Below are positions 20 through 50,137 of a stretch of 64,000 nucleotides of DNA, one piece after another (the stretch's first letter is position 1; the number at the start of each line of letters is the position of its first letter). The stretch lies in the sequence record NC_027364.1. One strand, given 5' to 3'. A model generated the notes under the pieces. That model was given only the letters and a program-made list of their open reading frames with translations. It was not told the DNA's origin and ran no database searches. The position numbers were made by a program, and so were the translations under genes.

Positions 20-232
20 CTACCTTTTTATATATTTGGGTCTGCATTGTATCTCCATTTTCAAGGACCATATGAGCTTATCAACGCATTGATCCTGTGC
101 TATTGTCCCTAGATAAAATAATACATCAAAATCTGATATTTTGATATTAAAAGGATCGGTGTGTACATTTTTAATAAACTCCCTGTACTTCATTTCATAT
201 GCATTAGGTATATTCTTATATGTCAATTTCAA
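20..232 (-). CDS. Small LGT-motif family protein (outlying member of the 1.5-7.9 kb array family)
   Basis: FYLGTIAQDQCVDKLIWSLK matches the array pattern LGTxxQxxxVxxxIxxL. Confidence 0.7.
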   Translation of the reverse strand: MKLTYKNIPNAYEMKYREFIKNVHTDPFNIKISDFDVLFYLGTIAQDQCVDKLIWSLKMEIQCRPKYIKR

Positions 233-533
233 TGATCCTCCCTGACATACCTTGTATTAGCTTATCATACATATCGAGCATCACTTTTTGAATACTAATT
301 AGTACTGGCATCGTGCAAATATCAATGTCGTATACTAAGCTGTACTGGAATAATTCATCTTCCTGCATTTGTACTAAATTAGGTAAAAGATAATTGTCTG
401 CCTCTTCATCCTGGTACTTGAAATGCATAACACCATCCTTTTTGTACAAAAGAATGTCAATATCACCCAACTCTTCGGCATAACCAAATATACATATATT
501 AGATGTTTTTGCTATATTAAATTTCATCTCCAC
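216..533 (-). CDS. Hypothetical protein, EExFQYSLV-motif family
   Basis: Contains EDELFQYSLVYD; the same motif is in 831..1226, 1192..1536, 31637..32308, 46081..46743 and 60846..61442. Confidence 0.7.
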   Translation of the reverse strand: MEMKFNIAKTSNICIFGYAEELGDIDILLYKKDGVMHFKYQDEEADNYLLPNLVQMQEDELFQYSLVYDIDICTMPVLISIQKVMLDMYDKLIQGMSGRIIEIDI

Positions 534-830: not shown

Positions 831-1536
831 CTAGTATTGCACTGTTCTAATGAAAGTACCTTTACTCATGGATTTAAGCTTATGAACCTCTTCCTGTATA
901 CCCTTGATTAACCCTAAAGGTATAGGTACATCATGTACTAAGCTGTACTGAAAGTATTCTTCTTCAGATAAAGTACTAACATCTGGAACGCCAATTTTAG
1001 TTAGATAATCTTGATGTGTTGACCAATAAATTATATCTTCAGTACTATTGTACTCCCCATATACTGAACAATATTGATGAATATCTTTCCTGTACCCTTG
1101 AGCAATAAAGAACTTATCTACTGCATTACCAGCATTAATAGAATTCACTTCGATTGTCACAGTACTTGAGCTTGTATAACTCTTAATATTATCAGTACTC
1201 AACTGTGTGTTCTTCATAATCACCATTAGGCTCCTGTTTAGATTCTTTCATTAGTACTATCATCTTATGTACTAATGGCATAGGAAACTCTAAATCCCAT
1301 ACTAATGATTCCTGAAAGTATTCCTCTGGTGATAAAGTACTTAAATCTTTAATATCAACGTGCTTGTATATTTTATTTTCGTAATTAACAAATGATATAT
1401 ATAAATCACTAACATAAGAATCATAGGTAATTGTGAATGGCTTACCCTTGTAATCCATTACATCTCTACATAGACTACTTTTGATATATGTATGTTCAAA
1501 TGATTTATATACCTTGAGTTGTATATTAGTTTTCAT
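831..1536 (-). CDS. Two hypothetical proteins (831..1226, 1192..1536), EExFQYSLV-motif family
   Basis: STLSEEEYFQYSLVHD and STLSPEEYFQESLVWD near their C-termini. Confidence 0.7.
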
Positions 1537-4500
1537 ATTTCTCTTTATTAGCTTGTTTGGTTTTATAGTGAATTAAATCTATTAATGTAATCAAGTACAA
1601 CGTCAAATAGTACTCTTGTTGATCTGTACCTAATGATACAAAGAACTTGTGCTCATAGATTAAAACCTGTTTCTCTTCAAATGGACATTTAATCCTCTGT
1701 ATAGGCTTAAGTAAATGATAGTACTTATTAAATCTATGATACATTTCTAGTTCTGTCAGTACTTTCATATTAAACATGTACTCCATTAGCAGTAGCATCA
1801 CGTAAAGCTGTCAAATACTTCTGTACGGCTTGCTCTTGCTTATTTGTACCTAAAAGTATATACATCCATAATTCACTGTAATGTACATCTTGTGTATAAG
1901 GGTTGTTGTAACTTTTTGATAATATAGCATCAAATTCAGATGCATGAACCCTTGTGAACTTAAGAATATCTTGTTGTGTTATGATTCTCATATCTTTTCC
2001 TGAACTATCTGCATAAGAATCCCTATGTGTGAATTAACAGTTCTCTCTTGATGCTGTGTTCCTAAGAGTGTCAGTACTATCATCTCTGAACGCAAAAGAT
2101 TTTTTTCAAGTTCACTTATATCAGTTCTTGAATCAAGTGCCATATATTTGTGATTATTCTTCCTGAATAGTGCCAAGTACTCTTGATTTGATATTTCCTT
2201 CATAGTTTATTCCTGATGCCATTTAAAAGTGCTCTAATATGCTCATTGACAAATCGCTCTTGGGAATCTGTTCCTAGAGTGAGTAGCAATCTTAAATCTG
2301 AACTTTTGATGTGATATTCTAAATCATTCTTTGATTCTTGCATCAGTTTCTTAAAGGATGAGAAGTTTGCAGCCATTAGTTCAATGTATTCTGCTGTTCC
2401 TAGGGGTTTGTGTGTGTGCTGTCTGTGCATTTTAATTGTATTACCCTTTTGAGTGTATTAATGTAATTATACACATTGGCTTCTTGATAGTTTGTTCCTA
2501 GAGTAGCTTGAACGTAGATTTCATTTAACTTAATAATTTTATCAGTATCTGGAAGTTTTGATGTGTTAATGGCAAATAACTTCGAAAACAGTCCATTTAT
2601 GATTGTTAGGTATTCTACTTCGGTAATGATTCGCATTTGCATTGGATAAACCTTTTTAGTTCATTGATGTAATCATTAATATTGCATTCTTGATAGTTAG
2701 TCCCTAGTGTAGCTTGAACATAGATTTCACTTACTAGAATACTTATTTCATCATCTGGTAATTTCATGCTTTTTGTTATAAACAGCTTTAGAATTAAACT
2801 ACTTAATAGTTGGTTGTATTCTGTGGGTGAAATGATTTTCATTTGCATTTGCATTTTCTCAGTACTGATTCTTTAAGTTCATTAATGTAGCACTCTACAT
2901 ATTCTTCTTGTAGGTTTGTTCCGATATGTAACAGTACTCTTAAATCTGCTCTCAGTACTTCTTTGTCATCTTCATCTATATCAGACAGTGTTATGTTTAA
3001 GAATTTACTTGAACTCTCTATAAGTAATATTACTGAATCACCTTTGCTTAAAATTTTCATAATCTCTTTTTGCTTTCCTCGCCAAAAGGTACATATACGA
3101 TTCTTCGTATTGTGCTTGGAAGTTTGTGTTTAAGAGTCGAAACAACTTCTGTTCTGCTAGAACGAGTTGCTTATCTTCATAACAACGGTAGCGTATCAAC
3201 TTTTTGTATTCGATGTTGATTACATCCATTACTATAAGTCCATGTTCATCATCTGTCAAGTGTTTCATGCATTTTTTCTTTTTCTTATATGTTTAGTTAA
3301 AAGGTATATTAGTTTTCTGATGTATTCTTCCTGATAGTTTGTTCCTAGGAGTGCAAGAAGTTTTGCTTCAACTAAAGCTAATTGACGTTCTTCGAATGTG
3401 TGTTCCAGTATGTACTTGGGGTTTGATTTTTTAGAAATTGCACTATTAGTTTTCATTACAATCGTATGATATTCATTAACTGTTAGGATTTTTAAATTCT
3501 TGAGCATGTATCTTTTCCTTTATAGAGAATTTAAGATATCGAAGCATACTTTCAATGTAATACTCTTGTCTGTCAGTGCCAAGAAAGTACATGAGTTGAA
3601 TGTATAAAACTTCTGCACTCCTTTCGGCATGTGACTTGTTTGTGTCGTTTGGAAGTTGATTTGTAAGTTTTCTGGATTTAATTAGTCGTTCTTTTAACTC
3701 ATCGTCTGTTAAGTATTTCATTTGCATTTACTTTTTCCTTAATAGTGATTTTAAGATATCTAATCATACGTGCAACATATTCCTCTTGTCTATCAGTTCC
3801 AAGAAGGTATGGTAGTGATTGGAATAAAACTTCTGCACTCCTTTCGGCAGGGGTTTGGTTTAGGTCAATTGGACGTTTATTGGTATATCTCTTGGCACGA
3901 ACTAATCTCTCGACGTATTCATTATAGGTTAAGTATATCATTTCATTTTGCATTTACATTCTCTCATGTACATCCTGGGTTAAAAGATCAATCCAGATTT
4001 CCACATATCGTTGTTGGTGTTGCGTCCCTAATAGTACACCCAACTTAGCTTCACACTCTAATAACAATCTGGTTTTGTATGGTAGACTTTGGAATCCTAT
4101 AGTAGCATCTAATTTGGTAATTGCATAGTTGATTCGGATGAATCTTTCTTGCAATGTGATGTTGATCATTTCTTAGTACACCTCAGTGGTTGGGTCATTT
4201 GATGAAAGTACAGCTTACCTCTGATTTCCAGTAGCAACTCCGCGATTAAGCGATTTACTTCTGTATCTTGATAGTTTGTTCCTAAGAATACACCCATCTT
4301 TAACTCACGCATCATAATCATTTTCTTACTGTGTTGAATTTCTGGGTTGTGATAGATTGTATTACGTTTGTGCGTAATTTTTGTCATACGCTCGGTATAT
4401 TCATCTTTACTTAAATTGATCATTTGCATGTTAATTACCCTTACATTTATTTTCAATACTATTCTTTAGTTTGTAGATATAGTTTTCTTCCAATGTATCT

Positions 4501-7500
4501 CTTAAGTGCGATTATGTATTCATCTACATAATACTCCTGATAGTTTGTTCCTATGAATGCACCCACCTTTAACTCAAGTTTCATAATCATCTTATTTCCG
4601 TGTTTAATGACTTCTCCGTGATGGATTTCATTAAGTCCAGGTGCAATTTTTACCAGGCGTTCTTTATATTTTGCTTGAGATAATTTAATCATTTTCATGT
4701 TAATTACCCTTACATTTATTTTCAATACTATTCATGAGTTCTATAAGATAGTTTTCTACCTTACCTTCCTGATAGTTAGTCCCTAGGAAGTTGCACAACA
4801 CGGCTTCTATGATTTTGATTTTCCTGATATCAGGCTTCAATCTTTTGTTATTGAATATTTGAATCCTTATATCTCTGGATGCATTTAAACGTTTTTGATA
4901 TTCATGGTAAGTTAAATTAATCATTTTCATTTACGTTTAACCTCTCGCTGGAGGGCATCAATTAACATCAGTACAGCATTCTCTTGATAGTTTGTTCCTA
5001 AGACTGAAAGCATCTTTATCTCATTTACTAAAATCAACTTCTTTGAGGGTTCAATAATGTGACTATCATAAACGGCCTTACGTGCTGGATAAGTTTTCGC
5101 CAGTATAACATAAAATTCGTCTTTACTTAAATTAATCATTTGCATTTACTTTTAACCTCTTTCTGTAGAGCGTCAATCCATAGATCTACATACATTTGTT
5201 GATAGTTTGTGCCTAAGAGTGCACCTACATAGAGTTCAGTTACTAGTGCGTGCTTAAGGTTAGCTTGGATGCTCTTATCGCTTGATAAGATTTTCCTTCT
5301 GCTGGTGCATGTTTTCAGGAGTCTGATGTATTCAAAGCCTTGTAATTTTCTCATTCTTTTGATATCACCTTGTTACGTAAGGCACTTAACAATACGTCAG
5401 TGTAGATGTTTTGATAGTTTGTCCCTACGAAAGCACCCAACTTCATTTCAGCTATTATAACACATTTGTCCTCTTGTGCAATAGATTTGTTTAACACAAT
5501 ACTATACACTTTTGATTTGATAGTTTGTAACCTCCAATGATACTGATACTCATTAAGGATTATCATTCTCTTTCCTCCAGATTTCGGTTCTCATGTGTTG
5601 GCAGTGTGCTTCGATGAACATATCTATTGATTTGGCAATTGCGTTTTTATCAGTGCCTGTCATCAGTACAAGCATCTCTGCCTCACTATGAATTAAACGC
5701 ATGATATCATAGGGTAATATTTCAGATACAGTGTCATAGTGTTTCTGTGCCAGTGTCTGCAATAGTTTACAATACATTTTGTGATTTAGTCTTTGTCGCA
5801 TTGTTTATTCCATTCTTTTTTGGCTCTATGGGTTTTATATTGGATTTGGTTTCTCAATGCTGCCAGGTATCGTAGAATGAACAGTTCTTGATAGTTTGTT
5901 CCAATGAATTTCATAAGATAAACATCACCGTTGATAACATCCAATTCAGGTGCACCATGTAATGTATAGTTTTTTCTAAGGGTGTTAAGAATAGAGAAGA
6001 GGGCGGTTTGATACTCAGAGCTTGATAAAGTTTTCATATTTTTCCACAATTCGTTCATTTAGTTTTATCTGTATAAGATCCATTAGTTGTTCAAGATAAT
6101 CGGTACAATATTTCTCTTGATATTGGGTTCCCACAAAGTACAGCAACCATAGCTCATGAACTTTAACTTTCATCTCGTTCCATGAAAGTGCATCGTCATC
6201 GTAGATTACTCTTGCTTCTGGGGTGAGCTTTCGAATTCTAAGTGAATATTCATCGTTCGTCAAGTGTTTCATTTACATTTATCCCTTATTAGATTTGTGA
6301 GTGCAACTATGTGTTCATGGATATAAAAATTCTGATGAGAAGTTCCAAGAAAGTACAACATCCCTCCCTCACTCTGCTCGACTTCTAGTTTAGTATCGAG
6401 TTGGTCAGATATGTTAATGAAAACCATTAGTTCTTTTCCTTTCTTTCTATTTGTTTCATAAGAACATTGATATACTCACCCGCAAACCTATTCTGATACT
6501 GCGTCCCCATGAATTCCAACATCCATACTTCAGCAACCTTTTCTTCAATTTCAGTCCATTGTAAGTACATCATAGTGAAGTAAATGGTGTTCTCTTTTTT
6601 TCTGGCACTCTTAGCACGGGCCTCGTATTCAAAGTTATTAATGATGTTCATTACATTTGTCCATAATGTAATTCTTGAGTGCAACTATGTGTGCAATAAC
6701 ATACTCTTCCTGGAAGTTCGTCCCCAGTACAGCCATCATGCGTTTATCGGTGGTGTTTATCCTGTGTTCCCTTACACATAAACCTTCTTTGTGAGGAAGT
6801 GTAAAATATTTGTTTATTGCAGCAACGATAATTTTATTCTTCTCGGAGTTACTTAAATGTTTCATAGTTTACTCCTGATATAATTCTGAAGTGCAATTAA
6901 GTATTCCCCTACATAATACACCTGAAAGTCTGTATCAAGGAATGCACCCATAAGTAAATCTTTTTCTAATACCCTTGATAAGTTAAGGTCTGCATTTGAA
7001 AGGTATATAAGTAAGATTTCACCCTGTGCGGAATTGAAACGTTTCTTATATTCTTCTGGTGTTAAAAAAATCATAATTTGCTCCTGATATATTTCTCAAG
7101 AGATGACAAATACTTTTCCTCATAATACTTCTGATAGTCTGTTCCTAAGAATGCACCCAATAGTATATCATTTTCCAATACCTCGGCTAAGTTTAAATCA
7201 GAAGTCTCTTCGTATATTATGAGGATTTCAAGTTGTCTGGCAGCGATGCGTTCAGTATATTGATATGAGTTTTCTATAATAATCATAATTTACTCTTTAT
7301 ATCTTGAATTAAAAATCGAATCCATTCTTCAACATAATCTTCCTGATGGTTTGTGTTCAGTACAGCCAACATGCGGATCTCTGCTCTTGCAACTTCAATT
7401 TCAGTTTTAGGAAGGTCTTTGCTGATATCCACCATTAAGTCCATGTATTTCAAGATAAGACCGTATGATTGGGTTCGTGTTATAGTTTTCATTGTTTCCT

Positions 7501-7883
7501 CGTGGACAATATTTTATTTTTCAATGTATCCATATATTGAATCACCCATCTTTCCTGATAGTTAGTTCCCAAAGTAATCAAAAGGTATAACTCCATTCGT
7601 TCTACGTGTGTGTCTGTATTATAAATCTTTGTGAAGTTTTTACGTAACAGTGATTGATATTCTTCTTTATTTAAAATACGCATTTTCATAGTTTACTCGT
7701 TATATCTTCAATTAAATACCAAATCCAATCGTTGACATACCTTTCCTGAAAGTTAGTTCCAATGAATAGTGCCATAATTAATTCACGCTTATAGGCAATA
7801 CCACGGTCATGGGACTTATACATTATCATAGCCATGTTATTGATAAGTCTTTCGTGGTGCTGTTCTTTAGTTAAAATACGCAT
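1526..7883 (-). CDS. Tandem array of 29 paralogous 52-96 aa proteins with a (L/F/I)GT(N/D/Q)(Y/F/H)QE motif
   Basis: The motif is visible in every consecutive ORF from 1526..1801 to 7686..7883 (most divergent: 5553..5801). Many junctions are overlapping ATGA stop/starts. One promoter upstream at 7918-7946. Confidence 0.9.
6269..6427 (-). CDS. 52-aa array member missed by the ORF track
   Basis: Manual translation MVFINISDQLDTKLEVEQSEGGMLYFLGTSHQNFYIHEHIVALTNLIRDKCK; fills the gap exactly and has an ATGA overlap. Confidence 0.8.
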   Translation of the reverse strand: MVFINISDQLDTKLEVEQSEGGMLYFLGTSHQNFYIHEHIVALTNLIRDKCK

Positions 7884-7917
7884 AGGATAAAATCCATAGG
7901 TTCATATGTGAAAAAAC

Positions 7918-7946
7918 ATCATACCCCATGTGAGGCATGATGTCAA
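7918..7946 (-). promoter_or_regulatory. sigma70-type promoter TTGACA-17-TATGAT driving the LGT array
   Basis: Direct read; ~35 bp upstream of the first array ATG. Confidence 0.8.
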
Positions 7947-7969
7947 GATGTTTTGTTCATATAAATGCA

Positions 7970-8335
7970 TTATACTTCAAATGAAATATTCCCAGTAGCA
8001 CGTGAGTCTTTACAATTCTCAATAGTAGTACATCCCAATTTTTGTATTTCACGTACCAATTCAATAGGAAGTTTAAAATCCCATTTCTTCGCTTCTTTTG
8101 CGAACGCTTTCTCGGACAGTACAACTAAGTTTTTTATACGAATCAATGAATAGATATCTGCATATTGATTTTCATCAATAGAAAATACCATTTCGTTATT
8201 GTTGCTAACAACTGATACAAGGGTGTCAGGTGCTTCAGTGATATCAGCAATGAATGATTTTATAGTAGATGTAGGTTTAAAAAACAACCATTCTACATTA
8301 AAGGAAGTACCACATTTATTAGATGATGGATTCAT
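7970..8335 (-). CDS. Hypothetical protein
   Basis: 121-aa ORF with a GAGG RBS upstream; no recognisable motif. Confidence 0.6.
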   Translation of the reverse strand: MNPSSNKCGTSFNVEWLFFKPTSTIKSFIADITEAPDTLVSVVSNNNEMVFSIDENQYADIYSLIRIKNLVVLSEKAFAKEAKKWDFKLPIELVREIQKLGCTTIENCKDSRATGNISFEV

Positions 8336-8618
8336 AGTTCGGTGACCTCTAAAGTTGAGTTAATGTAACTAACATATAAAATATGAATGAAATATAATAT
8401 AGACTATATATTATCAGAATTATATAAAAAGTCAAGCCCCTATCACTCCTTTTTTCGAAGTCGCTAAGGTTACCCGCCCTTTAGCCCCCTACGCATTTTG
8501 CCATAGTCCAATCCCTTTTATTTCAAAAAAGTCAAGGGATTACCTATGCATTTTTTTAACGCATAATTTTAAAAACGCCTTGACTTTTTTCTGAATCAGT
8601 ACTAGATCCCTTTACGCA

Positions 8619-11600
8619 TTAATCCTTCGTTACGCTAACGATTATCTGTGTATCCCCGTAGTCCTGCCATACTTCCACGCCATCGGTCGCCCTGGTTAGT
8701 CGTGCTGTCATCTGCTTAATGGTCTTAGGCTTTAGTGGAACCTGTTGCAGTACTGTACGCATAGCATCATTGACGTTATCATGTACGCCTGCAATAGTAC
8801 CTAGAACGCTGTATACTGTATAGAACATATGTATGTACTCCTGATATAGTTAAGGCCGCTACAAGGCGGCCTATGATGTTTGGTGATGTGTAACGCTTAC
8901 AGTCCTAAGATAGTGCGTGCTTCGTTACGTTCCGTACACAGCTGCATGATGTGAGCAAGTAAGTCCTTGCTAATGTATCCGTTGTCCATAGCTTCACGGA
9001 TAGATACATCATAAGCACCGAACCCCGTGCGAACGATACGCACATCATTCAGGTTAGTATTATAGATACCGCCGAGATCAACGGCTTCGAATACTACATC
9101 AACAGAATATTCATTGTTGCCATCGTGGAAGTTTTCCAGTGCAATAGTATTGGATACCGCCCAACGTTTGCAGTTTCCAATGATGCGGCACTGTTCCGGT
9201 TGGATAGTGCCATTACTTACAGCGTACTCCAGTGCATCTTTACCGAAAGTCCGAGCCAGTACTAAAACGTCAGCGAAGGAATTGATTGAGAAGGTCATGA
9301 TAAAACTCCTTAATTTAGGAGGGAGAACCATTTCCCCCTCTCTATGTAAAACATTATACTTGATTCTAAGTACTATGCAAGTACTTTTTACATTTTAATT
9401 CCTGGATTCAGGTAACGGTGAGATCCATATTCTGGATAGGTTTCGTTCCAGTACTGTAAATCGATAGTACCTTTCGCGTTAATCTTGTCTACCAGCTTAT
9501 TCATCTTAGCGTATACTACGTCAGCATCGATGCGTTTAAAGCCAGTAGCTTTAGTGAAGTAGTAGTGATTTGCTTCACTATCATTAAGGATATACCGAGC
9601 ACCGTTTGCAGTCTGTGCGATAATGATTGAGTATTCTACTTCCCGATCCAGACCGTCGATGAATACAGATGAAACATTGGTACGGATGAAAGCTTTAACG
9701 ATAGCGATTGAAGTACTCATTTTGAATCTCCTAACTTTGTGGGCCGTCGCACCATTGCCGCCCTACGAGATACATTATTGCAGTACTGATATACTTTGTC
9801 AATACTTTTTTATTAATAGTTTTAGTTCCACCAGCAGATAGTTACTCACCGTTATTAACTATATATTTTGGATACACTTATGCACCCTGTGGGCTGATTT
9901 GTTTCTATGCGTATATAATAGCAAAGGGACTGACCGGAGTCAATCCCTTTTTTATTCTTTTTTGTTAGATGATTCTCCAATCATCAACGATCATGGTAAG
10001 ATACCGAACCAGTGATTCGAGTGATTCGTGTTCTCGATAGTCTGCCGCACCGCCAGCGGTACAAGTACAGCCGATTAAGCCGTTTTGCAATTCCTTAATC
10101 TGTACATCGATAAGGTTGGCTTTAGCTTCTTTCAGTACTTCAACCAGGGCGAGAGCGATAGACATAATGTTTTACTCCAAACTATTGGCGGGAGAACTAT
10201 TCCCCCGCTCTATGTAAAACATTATACATTACTGGTTAGTACTGTCAAATAGTTTTTATGAAATATCTTCGATGTAGTCGGCCCATTTCATTTTTTCAGT
10301 ACTGTCAATGGCTACCGGATTATTTGGATCAAACCATTCACCATTACCGCAATACATACCAACGGCTACGGTTTTATAGCCATCCTGGGCCGTACACCAC
10401 GACATTGCACGATAGATATGGCCTTTAACTGGTTGCAGTACTGGTAACGTTTTATGGTCTTCTACGTAGGCCATAGCTTGAGGATTTACCCGATATTGTG
10501 TGAATTGTTCCATTATGTTTCCCCTTGTAGTTAGTAAAGTTATTACATCAGTACTATCAAGCTATGTCAATAGTACTGAAATAAAACTTTTAGATTAGAT
10601 TATTGAGGCCGTCAATGGTAGACTCACTTTCTTCTTTCTCCCATTGTCGGTAGTACTTCCATGCTTCATGATAGGTGGCGATTAGTTCATCTTTTTGATC
10701 CTGGTTACATGCCAGTACTGAATCACGGTGAGCGGTGTTATAGATAGAATCGAATGATTTCTTCTCTTCTGCCAGGTTAGCTACTTCCCGCATCAGTTCA
10801 TCAAAGTTAGCCATTTTATTACTCCTTTTAGTGGGGGAGGATATCTCCCCCTATGCAAAACATTATACTTTGTTTTAGTTATTATGCAAGTACTTTTTTC
10901 ATATAAACATTAAATTCTACACCGCCGTAACCTTCCACGATGATATGTTTTGCGTTATCACGTTTGCACATAGTGAAACCATCGTTTACGTGTTTTGCAT
11001 TTTCCAGGGCGACATCACCGATAGCGGCACATACAGCACTAATAACGATATTCCGCAAAGTACTGGTATCATTAGCGGTCATAGTAGTTTGCATGATTAC
11101 GTTGTCGTATACGTGTGCATTGATAGTGATTTCGATAGTGTTCATGGTGTATCTCCTGGACTGGCGGGAGAACTATTCCCCCGCTCTATGTAAAACATTA
11201 TACGTTAATCTAACTACAATGCAAGTACTTTTTAAATTTTATTTCCGATATAGTCTGGCCTGTTCTTTTCGGTCATACGCTTAAGCATTTTTTGCATATG
11301 GCTTATTGCTTGTAGTGTATCCTCTTCCAGGGATGAATCGAGATAATCAGGATCATTCTTCACCTTGCAATGATTATGATAGCGTAGTACTGCCAGTACT
11401 TTTTTAACTTCTTCAACTGTCATAATAAGTACTCCACTTCGTTAGCTTTCAGGTTAGTATCAATCATCAATGGTTTTTTGTAGTTCACAAAACGATTAGT
11501 TTTTTCGATAGCGAATCCCATATAATCCAGCTTACTAACAGTACATTCATTCTTAAAAACTTCTTTCGCTGCATCGATGGCTGATTGCATGGATAACCGA

Positions 11601-29705: not shown

Positions 29706-32700
29706 TTACTTCCTATATATAAGCATTAAGATATAGTAGTACTGATTATACTGTACATTCTCTTTAATATTATAAGGGTCTATAGCAATCTCGGTACATC
29801 TGTTAAATGCATATCTATTAAATGCCAGTGGAATTATAGATCTAATCCATACTTGTTCATTTTCTTTTAGTTTACTTATATAGAAGTTTTTATACATAGT
29901 ATTCTCTATTAATTAATATGATAGTACTAGTGTTAGTACTGAGCACAATTGTTCTTTGTAGTTCTTAGGGTATATAGAATCTTTTATGCACTCATTGAAG
30001 TGCCATAGGTATAATCTTGGGTCGCATTCTTTATATATTCTTACGGGGACGAATGTTAGTTTTCGTATATAGAATTCTTTATGTTCTTTATTCATATTAG
30101 TACCTGAATATAAGTAGGATTATGTTATAGTACTGGTTAGTACTGCAATGATTCTCTATACATCGATTAACAGTTATGGAATAGCTATATCTGGCGTAAG
30201 CATTATCCAGCGGGATTTTACATTGAGCACTTAGAGAAAGTACAGTAGGTAGTGTATTCAAATAGAAGTCTTTGTAATTATTCATACAGGAATAGTATAC
30301 CTATGATACCTGAGTACAGGTTAGTACTGTTACCATCTTCGTTTGCGTTTAAAGTCATTTGAATACAATTATTGTAGCATACTCTGCCGAAAAATGTATT
30401 AGTACTTAAAGGTGGAGTAGTCCTTAGAAACATTTGTTCTGAGGGGCTTATGTATTTGGAGTAGAATTCTTTATGTTCTTTATTCATATTAGTTAGTGTC
30501 TGTATATAAGTAATAGTAAGAATACGTACTGCACATCTTCATCTTTAGTATTGAGTACTGTACGTATTGCGTCATTAAACAAGAATATAGTACTTGGGTC
30601 ATGAAAATTTAAAGGGGTTCTGGGTACGGCATGTTTGTAGTTCCCTTTAACAAATTGTGTGTAGTATTCTCTATGCATATTAGTACCTATATATTAGGGC
30701 GAGAATGTAGTACAATTCATATGGAATGTAATTTGGGGTGATCGCACACTGTGTATGGTAAATGAATTGTTCGGTATTTTTCTTATCCTTGATATCTATT
30801 GGGATTTGTGGTATAAGCATTTTGGAGTTTAGATCGAGATGGCTTAAGTAGAATTCTTTATGCATATTGTTCTCTTAGAATACGAAAGCTAGGTACAGGG
30901 TATGATACAGTACTCGATGATAGCTGTCAAAATCTAGTATACATGCTTTAGTGCACATAGTAAAGTACACTTTATCGTTTTGTGCATTGATACCGCGAGG
31001 TTTATCTAATAGATTAGTTCTGAGGTACATTGGGAAATATTTTGTGTAGTATTCTTTATGCATATTAGTACCTGAATATAAGTAGGATAGTGTTATATAG
31101 CTGGTCATAACTACTACTATTTTCTATACTTCGTTCTATGCAGTTATTGAATCCCAGTACTGCCAAATCGTTATCCAGGGGGACTTTGTATCTGGTGTAG
31201 TGTTCAAAAATGCTGGGGAGAAATTGTGTGTAGTATTCTTTGTGCATATTAGTACTTATATATTAGTAAAAGGATGTGATACAGTACTCGATTATAGTCT
31301 TCAATATATATCGAGGATTTAGTGCACTGAATGAAGTAGTCTTTTTCGTAGTTTTTTTCTATACCCAATGCAACGTTTGGTACAAGGTGTTGGAGATACA
31401 TTGGGAGTTTCTCTATGTAGTATTCTTTATACATATATTATCCTTAGTACTGGAACGCAAGGTACAGGGTGTGGTACAGTTGTACTTGATAATTGTTTTC
31501 ATTAGCTTCTTCATTAAGTACTTGTTCAGTACATGTACGGAAGTAATCAGCTTCATATATACAGTCAATACCGCGAGGTTCATCTTCTAATAGATTTCCT
31601 TGTAGAAACTTTGGTAGTTCTTTTATGTAGAATTCTTTATACATAGTTTGTAATATACGTAATGAGGTGATGCATTTTCTTATTAGTACTGATAATTTCC
31701 TGTACATGTTTTGTCAGATTGTACGCGTTTTTATAGAGTGCTGGATTATCGATTACAGTACTGTACATGAATAGTTCTTCCTCGGATAATTCTTTGCCTT
31801 GTAATTCTTTGAGGAATTGTAGTACTGTATCAGTTTCTTCTGTACGTTGTGCTTGCCAGAAGTGCATATTCTCGTGTACTTTTTCTGCATCAGTAGAGTA
31901 TATGCCACCCATTTGGAATTGTGCTGTATTGACATCGTGGGAGGTGTTACAATTCCCGAAGAAGTATGTATTCCCGAAGTATAGCATTAAAGTGCACGGG
32001 GTATTATCCAACTGCATATTGATGATGAAGGATGCGTTCTTTAGTACCTTTGTGCTCGTATTAGTACTCAATACTTTTAAATCAGTATTATAGATATTCA
32101 TATAATGAACAGCTATATTATTTTTCTTCATGTACAATTCAAGGTTCTTTGATACGTTAACTCCATTTGTACTGGATTTTTCCTTTTTATTTCGTTTCTT
32201 TAGTACATTCGGGTGATACGTATATGCAGATGTAACTGATTCTGCCTGAATACTATTGAGGTACTTAAAGTGCTTAAGGTATTGTTTGCTGTGTGCATTA
32301 AGTTTCATTTGGTTTCCTTTATATAGATGCCAGGGCGAGGATTTCCCTGTAGGGATTATCTTGTGTTAGTACAGCATAAATGCAGCTATTGAGATTAATA
32401 TTTTTAGTACTTTTTGTTCCTAGTTTGTAGTACTTCACGAAGGTGTCGTACATGAAACGGTCTTTTATGGTTATACGTTCTCTATAGAATTGTTGCATAG
32501 TATTCCTTAAATAGCGATTAGTTTCATTACTTCTCTGTATGTGTACTTTTCGTTTTGTGCATCTCTTGTGACGACATATAGGAAGGTGTGTTTATCTTTT
32601 TTGTTCCCGCAATTGTAGAAAATATTGAACTTATTGAAGTTGAATCTTTCGGCGTGTTGTAGTTTAGTTAAATAGAATTCTATGTTCATTTTCTTCCTTA

Positions 32701-33756
32701 CATTTCAATAAGTTTCAGTACTGCTCGGTACGTGTACTTAGTTGTCAGTGCTTCTTTAATAGAAATACAGAAGTAATGTTGTTTGTCTCTTATACTGCCG
32801 CGTTTGTAGTACCACACATGGGAGTTGTGACTGTACTTGTCTCTGTCGGATAGTTGTTGGTAGTAGTAGCTTATATGATTCATTGTAATTAGCCTTACTA
32901 TGTTAAAGTACTCGGTCCCTGGTGTACCTTTTAGAACTTAAAGATGAGGTTCAGGATAGAGCGGTACTTAGTTGCAGGGAACGTATGTTCTATTGCATAA
33001 CGTGTCACCATCCTGAAATCGTAATTATAATACAGATTATCCTTTCTCATAGGTGGTGCTAAAGAGAATGATAGCTGTTCTTGTTTGGGTAGTTTACTAC
33101 AATAGAAATCTTTATGATTATTCATAGAAATATATTAGTCCTATTAAACCTGAGTACATAATATTTTTGTTATTACATTCGATTGCTTCTATAGTACTAC
33201 GTATACAATTATTAAAGCAATCTCTGGCGTGTGGTGTATCTATACTTAAAGGTGATACACTCCTTAGAAACAATTGTTCTTCGTTGCTAAGGTATTTGGT
33301 GTAGAATTCTTTATGTTCAGTATTCATATTAGTACTCGATTAAAAGGGCAAGGATATAATAGTATTGCATACTTTCTGCCCCTTGTAAAGCATTTCTTAT
33401 GATATTACTCCTGTACGAGTTCAGGAGTTTAGGACAACGTTTGTAGTGTATAAAAGTATTTTGTGTATACAGTAGGCTTTCTCGTAGACCTTTTGTTGGT
33501 AGTGCATCGATGTAGTACTGTTCAATGTTCATATAGATAGCAGTACTAAGATTTTTGATAATTGTTTATTGCTATCCCCGCAGATGTTGCTGTGTAAAAT
33601 ACTCACAATGAGGGTATCAATTGCATTGTTCATCATAAGGGTGCATCCTGGACTATTATAATTTTTTAGCTCAATTAGCCACGAACTATCCGCGAGAAAT
33701 TCCCCGTACTCTAGTTCATTTAGAGTATTGAGGTAGTACTTAAGAGTATTTGTCAT
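29706..33756 (-). CDS. Tandem array of 17 paralogous ~60-75 aa proteins with N-terminal (H/Y)K(E/D)(F/Y)Y and C-terminal YxxLxLI(Y/F)xY
   Basis: Ten members at 29706-31641, an unrelated 223-aa gene, then seven members at 32319-33756. One of these is a 59-aa ORF at 32319..32498 missed by the track. Promoter at 33782-33810. Confidence 0.85.
31637..32308 (-). CDS. Hypothetical protein, EExFQYSLV-motif family, inserted in the HKEFY array
   Basis: ELSEEELFMYSTVID near the C-terminus. Confidence 0.65.
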   Translation of the reverse strand: MKLNAHSKQYLKHFKYLNSIQAESVTSAYTYHPNVLKKRNKKEKSSTNGVNVSKNLELYMKKNNIAVHYMNIYNTDLKVLSTNTSTKVLKNASFIINMQLDNTPCTLMLYFGNTYFFGNCNTSHDVNTAQFQMGGIYSTDAEKVHENMHFWQAQRTEETDTVLQFLKELQGKELSEEELFMYSTVIDNPALYKNAYNLTKHVQEIISTNKKMHHLITYITNYV

Positions 33757-33781
33757 GTGTAGTTCTCCTTATATTCCTTCT

Positions 33782-33810
33782 ATAGTACACCAGTACTGAA
33801 AGGATGTCAA
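33782..33810 (-). promoter_or_regulatory. sigma70-type promoter TTGACA-17-TACTAT for the HKEFY array
   Basis: Direct read; AGTACT lies in the spacer; divergent from the propeller array. Confidence 0.75.
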
Positions 33811-33858
33811 GGGTTTTCTTTATGGGGTAAATATGATATAATGAATAAGGAGGGAAAT

Positions 33859-35061
33859 ATGTTACCTTTTGGAAGAATGGTTAAGTACGCAAATATTGCA
33901 CCAGGTCCAGAACCTGTAGAGTTCTCAGATGTTTTACAACAACATTATACAAACTGTATGTATCTACATAACCCAACTAATACTTTATATGGTTATGGTA
34001 GTAATAACATGTATCAATTTGGTCTTGGGAATTCAGCAGCAGTTTCGTCATTTACAGTACTTGCAAGGAACTGTGCAGCCTTTTGGCTTGGTGTTCAAGG
34101 TTCGTTGATGATTGATTTGGATAATAAAATATACTACACTGGGTCTGTGGCTGCATTTTCTGATTATGGAGATGCAACACCTGTTAATGGTTATTTGACA
34201 ACATGGACTGATGTTACTGTTGCATTTAATAAAATAGGTGTTATGGCTAATATGATCAAGAGTGTATATATAGGTGAAAGTACTAGAATATTATTAACCG
34301 ATGGTAGAGTAATTGCGTGTGGAAGAAATACCAATGGTGAATGTGGCTCTGGTAATAAAAATTCCATCCCTACACTCACAGTTATGACTAATATGGGTGA
34401 AGTTACACATATGGCATGTTCATTACAAGGAACGCACTATATCAAATCAAATAAAGATGCATGGTTTTGTGGTAAGGATAACTTTGGTGAAAGTGGATGT
34501 GGTGGTAGTTCTGTTGTATATTTGAACAAATTCGTGATTAGTAATGTAGAACATATTAGTACTACATACGATGTTACTTGGTGGTTTACTACTGGTGGGT
34601 CTGTATATTATAGCGGGGCTAACAGTACTGGACAAGCGGGTAATGGTACGACTACATCGGTAAATCAGCTAACACCAATTAGGAACACATCGGTCACGGT
34701 TGATGTAAGTAAGTACAGTACTTTTATTTGTCCAAGTAATATGGGAAATGCATCAATTGGTGCACCTATGGCACAATACGCACCATATGTTAGAAGTAGT
34801 GGTGCTAACTCATATGGTCAAGAAGGTAATGGAACTAATACATTAGTTAGAACTTGGAATATTTTTAATCTTAGTGCAATAAGTGGTGGTTATGAAAATG
34901 TTCTTATGGCATCTAAAGATTGGAGCAGAACCATAATAATTACTAAAGATTATAAATTATATGCATGTGGTGGCTGGAATGGAAATGGTGGTAGATTGCC
35001 AGATGGCACTTATAGTATTACTACACTAACATTAATGCCAACGCAGTTATGGCAACAATAG
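33859..35061 (+). CDS. RCC1/BLIP-II-like beta-propeller protein 1 (MLPF family)
   Basis: Repeats GSNNMYQFGLG, GRNTNGECGSG, GKDNFGESGCG, GANSTGQAGNG, GANSYGQEGNG. Confidence 0.8.
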   Translation: MLPFGRMVKYANIAPGPEPVEFSDVLQQHYTNCMYLHNPTNTLYGYGSNNMYQFGLGNSAAVSSFTVLARNCAAFWLGVQGSLMIDLDNKIYYTGSVAAFSDYGDATPVNGYLTTWTDVTVAFNKIGVMANMIKSVYIGESTRILLTDGRVIACGRNTNGECGSGNKNSIPTLTVMTNMGEVTHMACSLQGTHYIKSNKDAWFCGKDNFGESGCGGSSVVYLNKFVISNVEHISTTYDVTWWFTTGGSVYYSGANSTGQAGNGTTTSVNQLTPIRNTSVTVDVSKYSTFICPSNMGNASIGAPMAQYAPYVRSSGANSYGQEGNGTNTLVRTWNIFNLSAISGGYENVLMASKDWSRTIIITKDYKLYACGGWNGNGGRLPDGTYSITTLTLMPTQLWQQ

Positions 35062-35069
35062 GAGGGAAT

Positions 35070-36179
35070 ATGTTACCTTTTGGAAGAATAATTAGGTATG
35101 GAAATATTGTCCCTGGTCCTAAAAAAATAATTAAAGTTGGTGCTTCTACACAAGGTCAATTCTTATTGACTGATTCACATGATTTATATTACATAGGTAG
35201 AAATCAAGGTGGTGAATCTGGAAATGGTAATACCAACACGGTGTCTTCGTGGACATTAGTAAGTGCAGATGTTTCTAATTTTTTCGTGGGTGATCGTACA
35301 CTTGTTATTATTAAAAATGATAATACTATATGGACATCAGGTCAAACGTACTGGTTCTCATCTTCTACAACTACTTCTTACAGTACTGTATTAGTTGAAA
35401 GGACTAGTTGGTTTACCAATGCTATACCAGTCAGTGAAATTGCTAATATTGTATGCACAAATGGTTTAATATTTGTACTTAGCACTAATTCAGTACTCTA
35501 TGGTGCAGGAGATAATGGATATCGTGGTTCTTTGGGTATTGGTTCATCATCAATTTACACATTAACTCAATGTGCTACGAACGTTCGTAAAGTAATGACC
35601 AATGCGAATGATAGTATGTATCTTACATTAGATAATAAGCTATATAGTTCTGGATGGAATAGTAGTGGGCAGCATGGTACGGGGAACCAAACACAAATTA
35701 ACACTTGGGGATTGCGTAGTTCTGGTGTAATCGATGCAGCCATTGGTGGTAATGCATTAAATTACTATAATGGTACATCATATTTCGTATGTGGTCAAAC
35801 TCCAAACTTTCTTAGTTCAGGTACGACTACATTCCGTGCAGTTCCTTTAAGTACTTTGCCTAATAGTTCTCCGTTGTTTATGACGAATTCACCTGCCTTA
35901 AATACTGCTACACAAATGGTAATTACTAGTACATATCAGAAGGGTGTTGGGGCGAACCGTGGTTTGGGATTAAACAATTCTCAAACTGGTGCTATATATA
36001 GTGCTACCAATTTACAATTACCCGTTGAAGTTAGTGAGATTAGGGATGTTCTTTTTAGTGATGGTTTGACATCGATATTAACCAAAAATGGAGACGTGTA
36101 TAGTACTGGATCGTATTACGCCATTCCAGGTGCAATCGAGGATGTTGCAGTCTTTACTAAAATTGATTTACCAAAATAA
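35070..36179 (+). CDS. RCC1/BLIP-II-like beta-propeller protein 2
   Basis: MLPFGRIIRYGN start after GGAGG; GRNQGGESGNG, GWNSSGQHGTG. Confidence 0.8.
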   Translation: MLPFGRIIRYGNIVPGPKKIIKVGASTQGQFLLTDSHDLYYIGRNQGGESGNGNTNTVSSWTLVSADVSNFFVGDRTLVIIKNDNTIWTSGQTYWFSSSTTTSYSTVLVERTSWFTNAIPVSEIANIVCTNGLIFVLSTNSVLYGAGDNGYRGSLGIGSSSIYTLTQCATNVRKVMTNANDSMYLTLDNKLYSSGWNSSGQHGTGNQTQINTWGLRSSGVIDAAIGGNALNYYNGTSYFVCGQTPNFLSSGTTTFRAVPLSTLPNSSPLFMTNSPALNTATQMVITSTYQKGVGANRGLGLNNSQTGAIYSATNLQLPVEVSEIRDVLFSDGLTSILTKNGDVYSTGSYYAIPGAIEDVAVFTKIDLPK

Positions 36180-36249
36180 CATAATGCCAGTACTCTGTAC
36201 TGGCTTTCTTATTTGTATTAAATATAGTATAACAAATAAAGGAGGGAAT

Positions 36250-37389
36250 ATGTTACCTTTTGCAAGAATGGTTAAGTACGGGAATATCGCACCTGAACTG
36301 ATTCTACCTAAAAACAGGTTACAATGTTCTGCTGATGCCAAATTTTATTTACACACAAATGGTAATCTATATTGGTTTGGTTCTTCAGCATATGGACAAA
36401 GTGGTAATGGTTCATTGGACTCTTCAACTGAATGGACTCTTGTCAACTCAAATGTTACACGATATTGGGGTGGGGTACAAGGAACAATTGCTATAAAGAA
36501 AGATGGTACTATTTGGTACACTGGTAGACGTACTGTTATTCCAATACTATCTTCAAACACTAACGGCGTTTGGGTTGATATAACACAGAACTTTACTGAT
36601 TTCGGTGTCAGTGCAGATGATATTGATAGTGTTGTGATATCTTCGTGTATGCGTGTATTTTTAAAAAATGGAAAGTGGTTCTACTGTGGTGCTGGTACTG
36701 GTGGTGTTTTTGGGAATGGATCAACTTCAAGCGTTTCACGATTCACCTATAGTACAATAGAAAATGTTATCAGTGCTGGTTGTGCAATATATAGTACTGG
36801 ATTAGTACTAAATGATGGTTCATATTGGTATGCAGGTAGAACGTTTGTATCAGGAACGACGACACAAAACTTGCTCACATTTACACAAGATACTTCGATT
36901 AGTAATGCAATTAAAGCAGTCAATACAAATGAAACTTCTTATATATTTCTTAATGATGGTAATGTTAAAGTTGCATCTATTAACGACTATGGACAAGCAG
37001 GTACAGGAAATAGGTCAGTAGCCCCAATGAGTACATTAATTCCAAATTTATCATTCCAAGGAGAAGTGGAGTTGGTGGGTGAGCTTGGGACAAACCTTAC
37101 CGGACCATCCTGTATAATTAATAATAATAATAAGTTATTTTCATGTGGCCTTAATTCAAATGGTCAATGTGGTATTGGTACAACTGATATGTATATAACA
37201 TCATTCGCTGAAATGGATCTTACTGCATTAGAAGGTAGTAATCTTAGTAGTTTTTGTAAGAGCTATTCTTATACGATGTTAGTTGACGAATATAATAATT
37301 TATACACATGTGGTGTACCCAATCTTACTGGAATGTCTTCAACTACTGTACCAACAAGGGTTCCTGATTCACTTCTACCGTGGAAATAA
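36250..37389 (+). CDS. RCC1/BLIP-II-like beta-propeller protein 3
   Basis: MLPFARMVKYGN; GSSAYGQSGNG, GLNSNGQCGIG. Confidence 0.8.
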   Translation: MLPFARMVKYGNIAPELILPKNRLQCSADAKFYLHTNGNLYWFGSSAYGQSGNGSLDSSTEWTLVNSNVTRYWGGVQGTIAIKKDGTIWYTGRRTVIPILSSNTNGVWVDITQNFTDFGVSADDIDSVVISSCMRVFLKNGKWFYCGAGTGGVFGNGSTSSVSRFTYSTIENVISAGCAIYSTGLVLNDGSYWYAGRTFVSGTTTQNLLTFTQDTSISNAIKAVNTNETSYIFLNDGNVKVASINDYGQAGTGNRSVAPMSTLIPNLSFQGEVELVGELGTNLTGPSCIINNNNKLFSCGLNSNGQCGIGTTDMYITSFAEMDLTALEGSNLSSFCKSYSYTMLVDEYNNLYTCGVPNLTGMSSTTVPTRVPDSLLPWK

Positions 37390-37460
37390 TATAATGCCAG
37401 TACACTGTACTGGCTTTCTTATTTGTATTAAATATAGTATAATGAATAAAGGAGGGAAAT

Positions 37461-38609
37461 ATGTTACCTTTTGCAAGAATGATGAATTATGGGAATATTG
37501 CCCCTGGTAAGGATAGGCGTTTTAAAATATATTCAAGTGATTCTATGTATCTTCATGATACTTATACTAATAAGTTGTATGCATCTTCTGCGACGAATTG
37601 GGGTACTGGAACAGGTGTAGCATCGAGTAAATTTATTCTTTGTGCGGAGAATGTTAAACGAGTTCTATTGGAAGATAACAGTAGTAGTTGTCAATTGTAT
37701 GAAGAGAAAGGTACTGGAAAAGTTTTTATCACTGGTAACACGAAGGCATTCACTGGTGTAACTGATACAAAAACTTTGTGGACGGACTGTACTACGTGGA
37801 TAACATCAGGTGGTATTAATGTTTCTGATATAAAATACATGAGTAGTTTTAATGATATGAAGGTGAATTTGATAACAAACGATGGTACGTTGTATTGTTG
37901 TGGAGTTAACAATAACTCGAACCTATCATCATTTGGTGATGGTACAAACATTAATTCTTTTAACACATTCAAAAGGGTAGATACTATAACTTCGGTCAAA
38001 AAGGCAGTTGGTAACATATACCTAAAAGAAGATAATACTTTATGGGGTTGTGGTTTTAACTATTACTATCAGTTAGGTACAGGTAATCAAACTTCTATTA
38101 CTGGGGTGACGATGATTTCTTCAGATGTTATAGATTTTGATGTAAGTTATCAGAGTACATTTTTTATTAAATCGGATAATAATTTGTACGCTTGTGGTAA
38201 ACAGTTCGGTGCACAATACGGGAACGAATTTGGCACAGGTGGTACTTCTTCATCTACCGATATACAATACAAAACTCCGACATTATTGAGTTCAGGAGTT
38301 TATACTCTATATACTTGTGTTAGTAACATGGCATCACATATAGTTAAAGGTGATGAAGTTCTATACGCATCTGGGTCGAATGGATTTGGTCAATTAGGTG
38401 TTGGTAATAATATTAATCAGTACTCATATACTCCTTCGTATACTTCGTTTAATAGTTCGTGTAATTTGGTACGCACTCCATCTGGTTCACTTATACTTAC
38501 GGACACTGAGAAATTATATTATTGTGGGTATGCTATGGTAGTAATGGGGGGAATTGCTGGACAAAACATTCTTAGTTATACAGAAGTTGATATGTCATTT
38601 ATACAATGA
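37461..38609 (+). CDS. RCC1/BLIP-II-like beta-propeller protein 4
   Basis: MLPFARMMNYGN; GFNYYYQLGTG, GSNGFGQLGVG. Confidence 0.8.
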   Translation: MLPFARMMNYGNIAPGKDRRFKIYSSDSMYLHDTYTNKLYASSATNWGTGTGVASSKFILCAENVKRVLLEDNSSSCQLYEEKGTGKVFITGNTKAFTGVTDTKTLWTDCTTWITSGGINVSDIKYMSSFNDMKVNLITNDGTLYCCGVNNNSNLSSFGDGTNINSFNTFKRVDTITSVKKAVGNIYLKEDNTLWGCGFNYYYQLGTGNQTSITGVTMISSDVIDFDVSYQSTFFIKSDNNLYACGKQFGAQYGNEFGTGGTSSSTDIQYKTPTLLSSGVYTLYTCVSNMASHIVKGDEVLYASGSNGFGQLGVGNNINQYSYTPSYTSFNSSCNLVRTPSGSLILTDTEKLYYCGYAMVVMGGIAGQNILSYTEVDMSFIQ

Positions 38610-38680
38610 TTTAATGCCAGTACACTGTACTGGCTTTCTTATTTGTATTAAATATAGTATAATGAATAAAGGAGGAATTT

Positions 38681-39871: not shown

Positions 39872-39945
39872 TAATTTCGCCAGTACTTCAGTACTGGCTT
39901 TTCTTTTTTGTATTAAATATATTATAATGAATAAAGGAGGGAATT

Positions 39946-41125: not shown

Positions 41126-41196
41126 ACACAATGCCAGTACTCTGTACTGGCTTTCTTATTTGTATTAAATATAGTATAATGAATAAGGAGGGAATT

Positions 41197-42348: not shown

Positions 42349-42419
42349 CATTATGCCAGTACTCTGTACTGGCTTTCTTATTTGTATTAAATATAGTATA
42401 ATGAATAAAGGAGGAATTT

Positions 42420-43595: not shown

Positions 43596-43670
43596 TTATT
43601 TTAAATGCCAGTACAGAGTGCTGGCTTTTCTTTTTGATTAAATATAGTATAATGAATAAAGGAGGGATTT

Positions 43671-44876: not shown

Positions 44877-44947
44877 AATAAAGCCAGTATTTTGTACTGG
44901 CATTTTTTTGTCCTAAATATAATAACGATTTACATTTGGAGGATACA

Positions 44948-46743: not shown

Positions 46744-46785
46744 AACTCCTTATACATCCAGTACTTAATAGTACTGGATTTTTTA

Positions 46786-49225: not shown

Positions 49226-49254
49226 TGGAAATCCTCTGATATTAAACTTCTGTT

Positions 49255-49283
49255 ATAGTACTACACGTTGTTAGTACTGTCAA
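49255..49283 (-). promoter_or_regulatory. sigma70-type promoter TTGACA-17-TACTAT with AGTACT overlapping both hexamers
   Basis: Minus strand TTGACAGTACTAACAACGTGTAGTACTAT. Confidence 0.8.
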
Positions 49284-49290
49284 TATTGAA

Positions 49291-50061: not shown

Positions 50062-50137
50062 TTCGTTATCCTCATCAGTTGATGAAATAATTATAGCAAA
50101 AAGGGCTGACCGAAGTCAACCCTTTTTATAAACATAT

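Follow-up and report, generated by a model that had tools for sequence, protein, structure and literature searches.

A tandem array of 29 diverged mini-protein genes beside the terminal-repeat equivalent of Escherichia phage PBECO4

The 64,000-nucleotide stretch of NC_027364.1 analyzed here (the window, numbered from its first letter) revealed a compact array of 29 back-to-back, minus-strand open reading frames (ORFs) of 52–96 amino acids at 1526–7883, with a further ORF at 20..232. The ORF listing thereby confirmed the genes as they had been described in an earlier note, made from the sequence alone. The first 12 kb of the window are 100% identical to positions 124001–136000 of Escherichia phage PBECO4 (KC295538 / NC_027364), a jumbo myovirus of the genus Asteriusvirus with a genome of 348 kb, and about 5% of the PBECO4 genes belong to the array family. 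The array is a tandemly duplicated multigene family, comprised of 29 co-oriented genes whose nearest relatives are preferentially adjacent. Its members have a confidently predicted three-helix fold and are under purifying selection, the array lies beside the equivalent of a terminal repeat, and its gene content varies between strains. The favored explanation, to which we assign a probability of about one half, is that the genes encode early cytoplasmic mini-proteins, each binding a different host factor for takeover or counter-defense, with the conserved residues acting as the scaffold.

Family membership and predicted fold

A profile built from the 29 members scored each of them at E values of 1e-16 to 1e-27, a result that is circular because the same members built the profile. 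An independent check was provided by PHROG 4148, which was matched by all ten members tested (E 2e-11 to 1e-26, profile positions 1–72 of 74) and also by the outlier at 20..232; fringe matches were to PHROG 28039 and PHROG 5058. Within the remaining 56 kb of the window the self-built profile found only this outlier, and an additional copy straddles the window start (NC_027364 123787–124077, E 3.5e-7). By these profile matches, the array genes are one multigene family belonging to PHROG 4148, whose function is unknown. That entry carries no note on function, structure or genomic organization, and the array layout, fold and evolutionary pattern of the family are new from the present analysis. 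Nothing meaningful was matched in Pfam, NCBIfam or the PDB sequences, and PDB folds provided no characterized relative, in agreement with the earlier note, which knew of no named family and would have taken a match to a characterized one of mundane function as a refutation. Of the 29 array genes, the RefSeq record annotates 17, of which several have a truncated start, and is missing the other 12. Protein starts were chosen here as those nearest the profile start, which makes the members mostly 64–85 amino acids long.

The best-conserved columns in an alignment of 330 copies from 12 genomes are a Thr (97%), a Gln (95%), a Leu (93%) and a Gly (89%), and an acidic residue (Glu or Asp) is found eight positions before the Gly in 92% of the copies. 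The last helix has conserved hydrophobic positions at a three-to-four-residue spacing; that the other conserved positions are mostly hydrophobic and spaced in this manner suggests that they form the core. The members had been described as sharing only a C-terminal core, with N-terminal halves that vary freely. This is too narrow, since an N-terminal motif, M-K-x-L-T-x-x-E-Y-x-x-R-L, is also conserved, with a mean of 1.65 bits per column over columns 1–13 as compared with 0.91 in the middle and 1.82 in the C-terminal part. The codons of the L-G-T-N-Y-Q-E motif are near-invariant at positions 1 and 2 and use all synonymous choices at the third, which places the conservation at the level of the protein and rules out an RNA or DNA motif in its place. 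The motif Gly is replaced by Asn or Asp in three PBECO4 members, net charge ranges from -6 to +8 across the members, and inspection of the sequences by eye, with no predictor run, showed neither a signal peptide nor a membrane segment.

Prediction of the monomer structure, a check proposed in the earlier note, was performed for member 1 with AlphaFold2 and an alignment of the 29 paralogs. The model is a confident three-helix bundle (predicted local distance difference test (pLDDT) 97.5, predicted template modeling score 0.81) with helices at residues 6–24, 28–39 and 46–64. In the model, the G-T-x-x-Q residues form the turn that leads from helix 2 into helix 3, as well as the first part of helix 3, and pack on the conserved N terminus at one pole of the bundle, where a short bridge joins residue 2 and the motif Thr. 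The N/D-x-x-E of the motif may represent a helix N-capping box, whose pattern it follows. A Foldseek search of the PDB with this model returned generic bundles only (best E 4, template modeling (TM) score at most about 0.5), and a search of BFVD solely the same family, in phages 121Q, UB and slurp01. The predicted three-helix scaffold thus appears not to have been seen before, having no fold neighbor in the PDB. The model makes it most likely that the conserved residues serve to build the fold, and the G-T-x-x-Q motif may simply hold it together.

The hydrophobic-Gly-Thr-x-x-Gln turn superficially resembles a helix-turn-helix signature of the Cro/Xre type, and three helices are of the right overall size for small DNA-binding regulators, each with its own operator. 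Such a role is nevertheless highly improbable: the PDB matches (E>4) included no helix-turn-helix protein, no helix-turn-helix family in Pfam was matched even at E values up to 1, helices 2 and 3 are longer (12 and 19 residues, respectively) than in the classic motif, and many members are acidic or neutral. The helix-turn-helix reading of the motif was rejected on the fold search and Pfam profile evidence.

The same pole of the bundle could instead serve as a docking surface. In an adaptor library, the N-terminal strand and G-T-x-x-Q would dock all copies on one shared hub (for example, a host protease, RNA polymerase or a phage protein), with the variable helices recruiting the targets. The N-terminal motif and the turn meet at one end of the predicted bundle, and Thr, Gln and Gly are conserved above most hydrophobic positions. 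Ser replaces the Thr in only 1% of copies, and Glu does not rank among the three most frequent residues at the Gln site, although both substitutions would usually be expected to be tolerated in a simple helix cap. Moreover, natural variants with an extra C-terminal part (P0076, P0072 and P0080, of 269, 122 and 121 amino acids, respectively) indicate that the unit can act as a module; the added parts of P0076 and P0072 matched no Pfam or PHROG family. Against this, the motif sits at a helix-helix turn, where folding alone predicts conservation, and the Gly is exchanged in the three members mentioned above. The Gln is absent from member 11, whose orthologs are nevertheless 63–91% identical in the nine PBECO4-clade genomes compared. 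We regard the adaptor model as rather unlikely and keep it under consideration because Thr, Gln and Gly are retained more strictly than many hydrophobic positions.

Duplication, selection and strain variation

The PBECO4 paralogs share a median identity of 24% (maximum 54%). For 12 of the 29 genes the nearest paralog is next door, where about two would be expected, and none of 10,000 permutations reached 12 (p<1e-4). This excess supports growth by tandem duplication, as had been proposed from four adjacent pairs (2400/2615, 3476/3699, 4166/4459 and 6862/7071), all of which proved to be mutual best paralogs at 45–54% identity. At a threshold of at least 60% identity, the copies in the 12 genomes fall into 60 ortholog clusters, of which about 20 have one copy per genome in nearly all of the ten genomes of the PBECO4 clade and about a dozen are patchy; only five are ever present twice in one genome. 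Most array genes have orthologs at 60–100% identity across the PBECO4 clade. The term accordion, used in the earlier note, is therefore not appropriate in the sense of an ongoing amplification, since the copies are old and about 20 of them persist as single-copy ortholog groups.

The ratio of nonsynonymous to synonymous substitution rates (dN/dS) between orthologs is 0.35 for the array (143–147 pairs), with per-gene values of 0.15–0.96, as compared with 0.17 for small genes on the repeat side and 0.35 for genes downstream. An ortholog dN/dS of about 0.35 indicates that the array genes are real and under purifying selection. By this measure, the array evolves faster than its conserved repeat-side neighbor, the ratio being about twice as high. 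The repeat-side genes served as the yardstick because the region at 30–54 kb, considered as a conserved core, is a variable paralog block and was dropped. Calculated by region over 147 pairs, as had also been suggested, the ratio is 0.37 for the part preceding the motif and 0.35 for the motif with all that follows it; the two halves are equally constrained, which speaks against a free N terminus.

These data bear on whether the array is functionless filler, that is, tandem duplicates that padded the genome as the capsid grew and have since drifted. Genome growth by duplication, as a ratchet, has been raised for phage 121Q (Hua et al. 2017, PMC5646251). The array copies are, however, intact ORFs in every genome examined, the paralogs are 24% identical and yet most orthologs are retained at 60–100%, and a far more remote, uncultured relative retains both the family and its arrangement. 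The selection data contradict neutral filler, which is extremely unlikely.

Copy number was found to vary from 20 to 33 per genome, a variation that the earlier note had proposed to look for across phages. Phage 121Q, a close relative of PBECO4, has 25 family copies at the same position. The Turkey5/JNE01 clade has only two ortholog clusters in common with the other genomes; the member best kept there is member 26, with an ortholog of 78% identity. Between PBECO4 and Turkey5, the adjacent repeat proteins are a median of 95% identical as compared with 36% for the best matches of the array, revealing a sharp boundary of variability at the repeat edge.

The family has a narrow range. A profile search of 1.84 billion representative proteins recovered only 84 clusters (50% identity), nearly all of 52–122 amino acids, most of which map to the related loci examined here. 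A tblastn search with member 15 matched only 36 Asteriusvirus-like records of Escherichia and Salmonella; with a single-member query, IMG/VR yielded only 121Q and the GTDB species genomes no related locus. Three metagenomic contigs (L014–L016) have the same layout with 12–17 copies and come from at least one far more diverged uncultured relative; L015 has about 3% of its DNA in common with cultured phages, at about 77% identity, and tblastn searches with the distant metagenomic members P0072, P0081 and P0065 against cultured phages were empty. A ParE-like toxin-family protein (PF24732) is encoded at L015 5375–5626, among the small genes of a repeat-like early region. Three further loci, L003, L004 and L005 (GCA_036253055, GCA_036253035 and GCA_036254115, respectively), are 347–352 kb long and look like complete Asteriusvirus-like genomes within NCBI assemblies, which suggests carry-over, or a carrier state, of a lytic jumbo phage in the sequenced cultures.

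Genomic position, promoters and neighboring genes

A promoter-like site scoring at least 10/12 is found at the head of the array in 11 of the 12 genomes (PBECO4 and ten of its 11 relatives). Phage A4 has the same promoter type as PBECO4 (TTGACA-17-TATGAT), whereas most other relatives have TTGACT-16-TA(A/T)(A/T)AT instead. With starts placed nearest the profile start, all 28 junctions lie between -49 and +35 nucleotides, 12 of them being ATGA overlaps, and Shine-Dalgarno-like strings are found within the 3' ends of preceding array genes. No convincing terminator was found inside the array, and the overlap of member 29 with the gene at 1192..1536 indicates that the transcription unit probably continues past it. 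One internal site matches a promoter at 11/12; the non-coding strand of the window has about 0.6 such matches per 6.4 kb, and this site may be a chance match. The genes had been described as translationally coupled under one promoter: a packed, co-oriented block behind a promoter-like site is supported, and its overlaps are consistent with putative coupling and a single promoter.

The chromosome ends are annotated in the related phage vB_Ec-M-J, which has a 21,525-bp direct terminal repeat. Its array starts about 100 bp inside the inner edge of the repeat and shares its strand with 53 small repeat genes. Alignment with the ends of this repeat locates the equivalent region in the window and puts its inner edge about 0.6 kb from the start of the PBECO4 array. 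The guanine-cytosine skew flips near 30 kb, in agreement with this placement, by which the physical left chromosome end maps to about 29442 in the record. Repeats of about 21 kb have been reported for phages Sharanji and fEgEco12, and were verified by restriction digests in the latter (PMC11895373, PMC13070987). In PBECO4, the first array gene is set apart from the repeat edge by about 500 bp of sequence additional to that of vB_Ec-M-J (7887..8386), a stretch that carries the promoter-like site at 7946 and one gene (7970..8335) of a second family, described below.

On the minus strand between 7.9 and 29 kb there are 20 sigma-70 matches at 11–12/12, eleven of them perfect; one is at the array head and the other 19 lie inside the repeat equivalent, as compared with six on the plus strand of the whole window. 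Genes in this region are annotated in relatives as a Ser/Thr kinase, a DksA-like protein and an acetyltransferase. Together, the position and promoter density have the signature of an early region that would be read by the host polymerase. The repeat equivalent holds dozens of small, individually spaced genes.

Both flanks of the array carry the second family, of 100–210 amino acids (L-S-x-E-E-Y-F-Q-x-S-L-V-x-D; PHROG 13866 and relatives), which runs on for about 20 kb downstream and has at least 23 copies in vB_Ec-M-J. Three of its genes set member 30 off from the main block. No relation between the two families was detected (hhalign probability 0.3%), and an AlphaFold2 model of the second family, of moderate confidence (pLDDT 72), had no neighbor in the PDB. 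A third paralog block, at about 30000..54000, contains about ten RCC1-like genes annotated as regulator of chromosome condensation or DNA condensation protein; it is highly variable between relatives, and RCC1-like-annotated proteins are among the virion proteins of phage phAPEC6. Within the repeat region, about 190 bp at 11232..11426 are 84–89% identical to coliphages of 131–141 kb, e.g. EduardKellenberger, AlexBoehm and phiWec196, and also match records of similar size named Campylobacter phage D# and A140, whose Campylobacter labels look doubtful. This segment appears to be a small gene that has passed between unrelated groups of coliphages. The coordinates of all features are collected in Table 1.

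Table 1. Coordinates of the array members and associated features. Positions refer to the window unless a locus is named; lengths are in amino acids (aa); E values are for the family profile, with those for PHROG 4148 given separately.
Feature	Position	Strand	Remarks
Promoter-like site, sigma-70-type (TTGACA-17-TATGAT)	7918..7946	-	35 nt upstream of first ATG of array
Member 1, 65 aa	7686..7883	-	E 4e-20; PHROG 4148 E 7e-20; AlphaFold2 pLDDT 97.5, three helices
Member 2, 64-66 aa	7489..7689	-	E 8e-20; PHROG 4148 E 1e-19; ATGA overlap with member 1
Member 3, 69 aa, N-T-N-H-Q variant	7283..7492	-	E 9e-23
Member 4, 71 aa	7071..7286	-	E 3e-20; mutual best paralog member 5, 51% identity
Member 5, 70 aa, D-T-D-F-Q variant	6862..7074	-	E 4e-23; PHROG 4148 E 4e-22
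Member 6, 75 aa	6638..6865	-	E 3e-26; no close 121Q ortholog (best 28% identity)
Member 7, probably 74 aa from internal ATG of MNIINN	6427..6684	-	E 2e-23; start refined
Member 8, 52 aa from ATG, shortest	6269..6427	-	E 2e-16; helix 1 mostly missing
Member 9, 85 aa	6015..6272	-	E 3e-27; PHROG 4148 E 7e-24
Member 10, 83-90 aa	5786..6058	-	E 1e-20; PHROG 4148 E 1e-20
Member 11, 82 aa, divergent (T-G-T-D-K-N and insertion, no Q)	5553..5801	-	E 4e-19
Member 12, 71 aa	5351..5566	-	E 3e-24
Member 13, 72 aa	5136..5354	-	E 8e-26
Member 14, 70-72 aa	4927..5145	-	E 4e-23; PHROG 4148 E 3e-21
Member 15, 74-76 aa	4700..4930	-	E 6e-26
Member 16, probably 77 aa	4459..4725	-	E 1e-26; PHROG 4148 E 1e-26; mutual best paralog member 17, 45% identity
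Member 17, probably 85 aa	4166..4456	-	E 1e-25
Member 18, 71 aa	3954..4169	-	E 2e-21
Member 19, 80-84 aa	3699..3953	-	E 4e-22; mutual best paralog member 20, 54% identity
Member 20, 81-83 aa	3476..3727	-	E 5e-24
Member 21, 80 aa	3265..3507	-	E 5e-21; PHROG 4148 E 2e-11
Internal promoter-like site (TTGACA-17-TATAGT), 11/12 match, possibly chance	3231..3259	-	inside member 22
Member 22, 76 aa, N-T-N-F-Q variant	3038..3268	-	E 9e-19
Member 23, 73 aa	2839..3060	-	E 6e-23
Member 24, 75-79 aa	2615..2854	-	E 9e-26; mutual best paralog member 25, 54% identity
Member 25, 78-80 aa	2400..2642	-	E 1e-24; PHROG 4148 E 2e-18
Member 26, 76 aa	2200..2430	-	E 8e-22
Member 27, 71 aa	1988..2203	-	E 2e-22
Member 28, 73 aa	1770..1991	-	E 4e-22
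Member 29, probably 80 aa	1526..1801	-	E 8e-22; PHROG 4148 E 6e-22; 3' end overlaps next gene (1192..1536)
Outlying member 30, 70 aa, L-G-T-I-A-Q	20..232	-	E 1e-5; PHROG 4148 E 2e-6
Terminal-repeat equivalent (about 21 kb in relatives)	about 8476-29442		alignment with vB_Ec-M-J repeat ends
Second-family genes	7970..8335, 1192..1536, 831..1226, 216..533	-	
Second-family stretches	L001 279-3077; L002 1206-20347		
Extended variant P0076	L003 10001-10810		269 aa total
Extended variant P0072	L014 8470-8838		122 aa total

Candidate functions and comparison with known systems

In the favored explanation, the array would be transcribed early by host RNA polymerase from the sigma-70-type promoter by the left terminal repeat, and expressed as one long, translationally coupled operon. 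The family arose through ancient tandem duplications, with each copy then kept as a distinct gene by purifying selection. The fold would be built by the N-terminal M-K-x-L-T-x-x-E-Y, the spaced hydrophobic residues, the L-G-T-N-Y-Q-E turn and the first residues of helix 3, leaving a surface that would differ from copy to copy. Each copy would bind, and then block or redirect, a different host protein during takeover, defense proteins included, and the gene set of a phage strain would reflect the hosts it had met. Early expression, protein binding and host targets are the steps that we infer here. A library of host-directed proteins, as proposed in the earlier note, fits the context of an array that is placed in a putative early region, undetected in the virion and hypervariable between clades.

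The virion evidence comes from the close relative phAPEC6, in which none of the 62 virion proteins is of 7–10 kDa (PMC7247149, Table 1), making a structural role unlikely. It also bears on whether the paralogs co-assemble as subunits of a single hetero-oligomer, located either in virions or in infected cells. Balanced amounts would be favored by tight translational coupling, and the retention together of about 20 single-copy genes across the PBECO4 clade would be in keeping with such an assembly. The range in copy number and the near-wholly different set in Turkey5/JNE01 are, however, hard to square with a fixed assembly, and the array lies in a host-type promoter context, not in a late structural gene block. 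Co-assembly is therefore improbable.

Several points weigh against host-directed binders as the explanation. The evidence for early timing consists of consensus promoter matches, and the literature search produced no transcript data for the genus. Small proteins are easily missed by mass spectrometry of virions, which applies to the phAPEC6 proteome. The literature searched contains no expression, interaction or phenotype study of any member, and structural and sequence neighbors in the PDB, BFVD, Pfam and NCBIfam provide no functional lead. The hypervariability would also fit other accessory roles, and the conservation of Thr, Gln and Gly may exceed what maintenance of the fold needs, which would allow for a shared ligand or partner.

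A bolder form of the proposal is that about 30 miniature binders, built on one new three-helix scaffold, each act against a different host defense or regulatory protein, possibly while docked on a common hub through their invariant pole (N-terminal strand and G-T-x-x-Q); this is doubtful and is put forward only tentatively. Were such a binder repertoire real, it would be the counterpart in bacterial viruses of the multigene host-range families known from poxviruses and African swine fever virus, and its approximately 84 sequence types across the lineage would constitute a pool of exchangeable parts determining which strains of E. coli and Salmonella can be infected by each jumbo phage. As inhibitors or adaptors, the proteins would supply, in compact form, new small binders for E. 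coli proteins and could help to explain why host range differs from one Asteriusvirus phage to another; several of these phages were isolated for possible use in phage therapy. Were they neither, the array would still be a clean case of 30 old paralogs kept distinct within one operon.

The literature search on the array itself found only a one-sentence mention of a tandem gene array in 121Q, with no functional work (Hua et al. 2017, mBio, PMC5646251). The sentence gives no coordinates, family definition or function, and refers to very similar genes, in contrast to the median identity of 24% among the PBECO4 paralogs. It probably describes the same array, but could instead mean another paralog block of 121Q, e.g. 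the RCC1-like genes.

The array can be compared with four kinds of known system. Orphan immunity arrays of colicin, contact-dependent inhibition (CDI) and type VI loci consist of small, helical, diverged tandem paralogs, each specific for a toxin variant; they adjoin a toxin gene in bacterial genomes, whereas the array described here has no evident toxin partner and no homology to them. In the poxvirus genomic accordion (K3L), recent, near-identical copies expand and collapse within passages. Tandem duplication is common to both, in the poxvirus of a host-directed gene, but the array copies are ancient and only the five clusters noted above have ever doubled. The terminal-redundancy module of SPO1, the pre-early region of T5 and the hyperplastic regions of T4 contain small host-directed genes that vary from relative to relative and follow strong promoters of the host type. 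Like these takeover blocks, the array has many tiny, variable genes at or beside a terminal repeat with putative host-type promoters; unlike them, it is not a mixture of unrelated genes but 30 paralogs of one fold. Lastly, the MGF110, MGF360 and MGF505 families of African swine fever virus and the ankyrin and BTB-kelch families of poxviruses have roles in host range or immune evasion, and they too comprise many diverged tandem paralogs beside terminal repeats, with copy content that varies between strains. The array proteins are smaller, have a bacterial host and bear no sequence or fold relationship to these families, so the likeness is one of logic. The array combines a confidently predicted fold without known neighbors, a position in a putative early region, purifying selection on each copy and the exchange of nearly the whole set from clade to clade beside a 95%-conserved repeat, all of which are marks of host-interaction genes in other large viruses. 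By analogy, its closest parallels in mode of action would be the host-takeover blocks of phages and the terminal multigene families that large eukaryotic DNA viruses carry.

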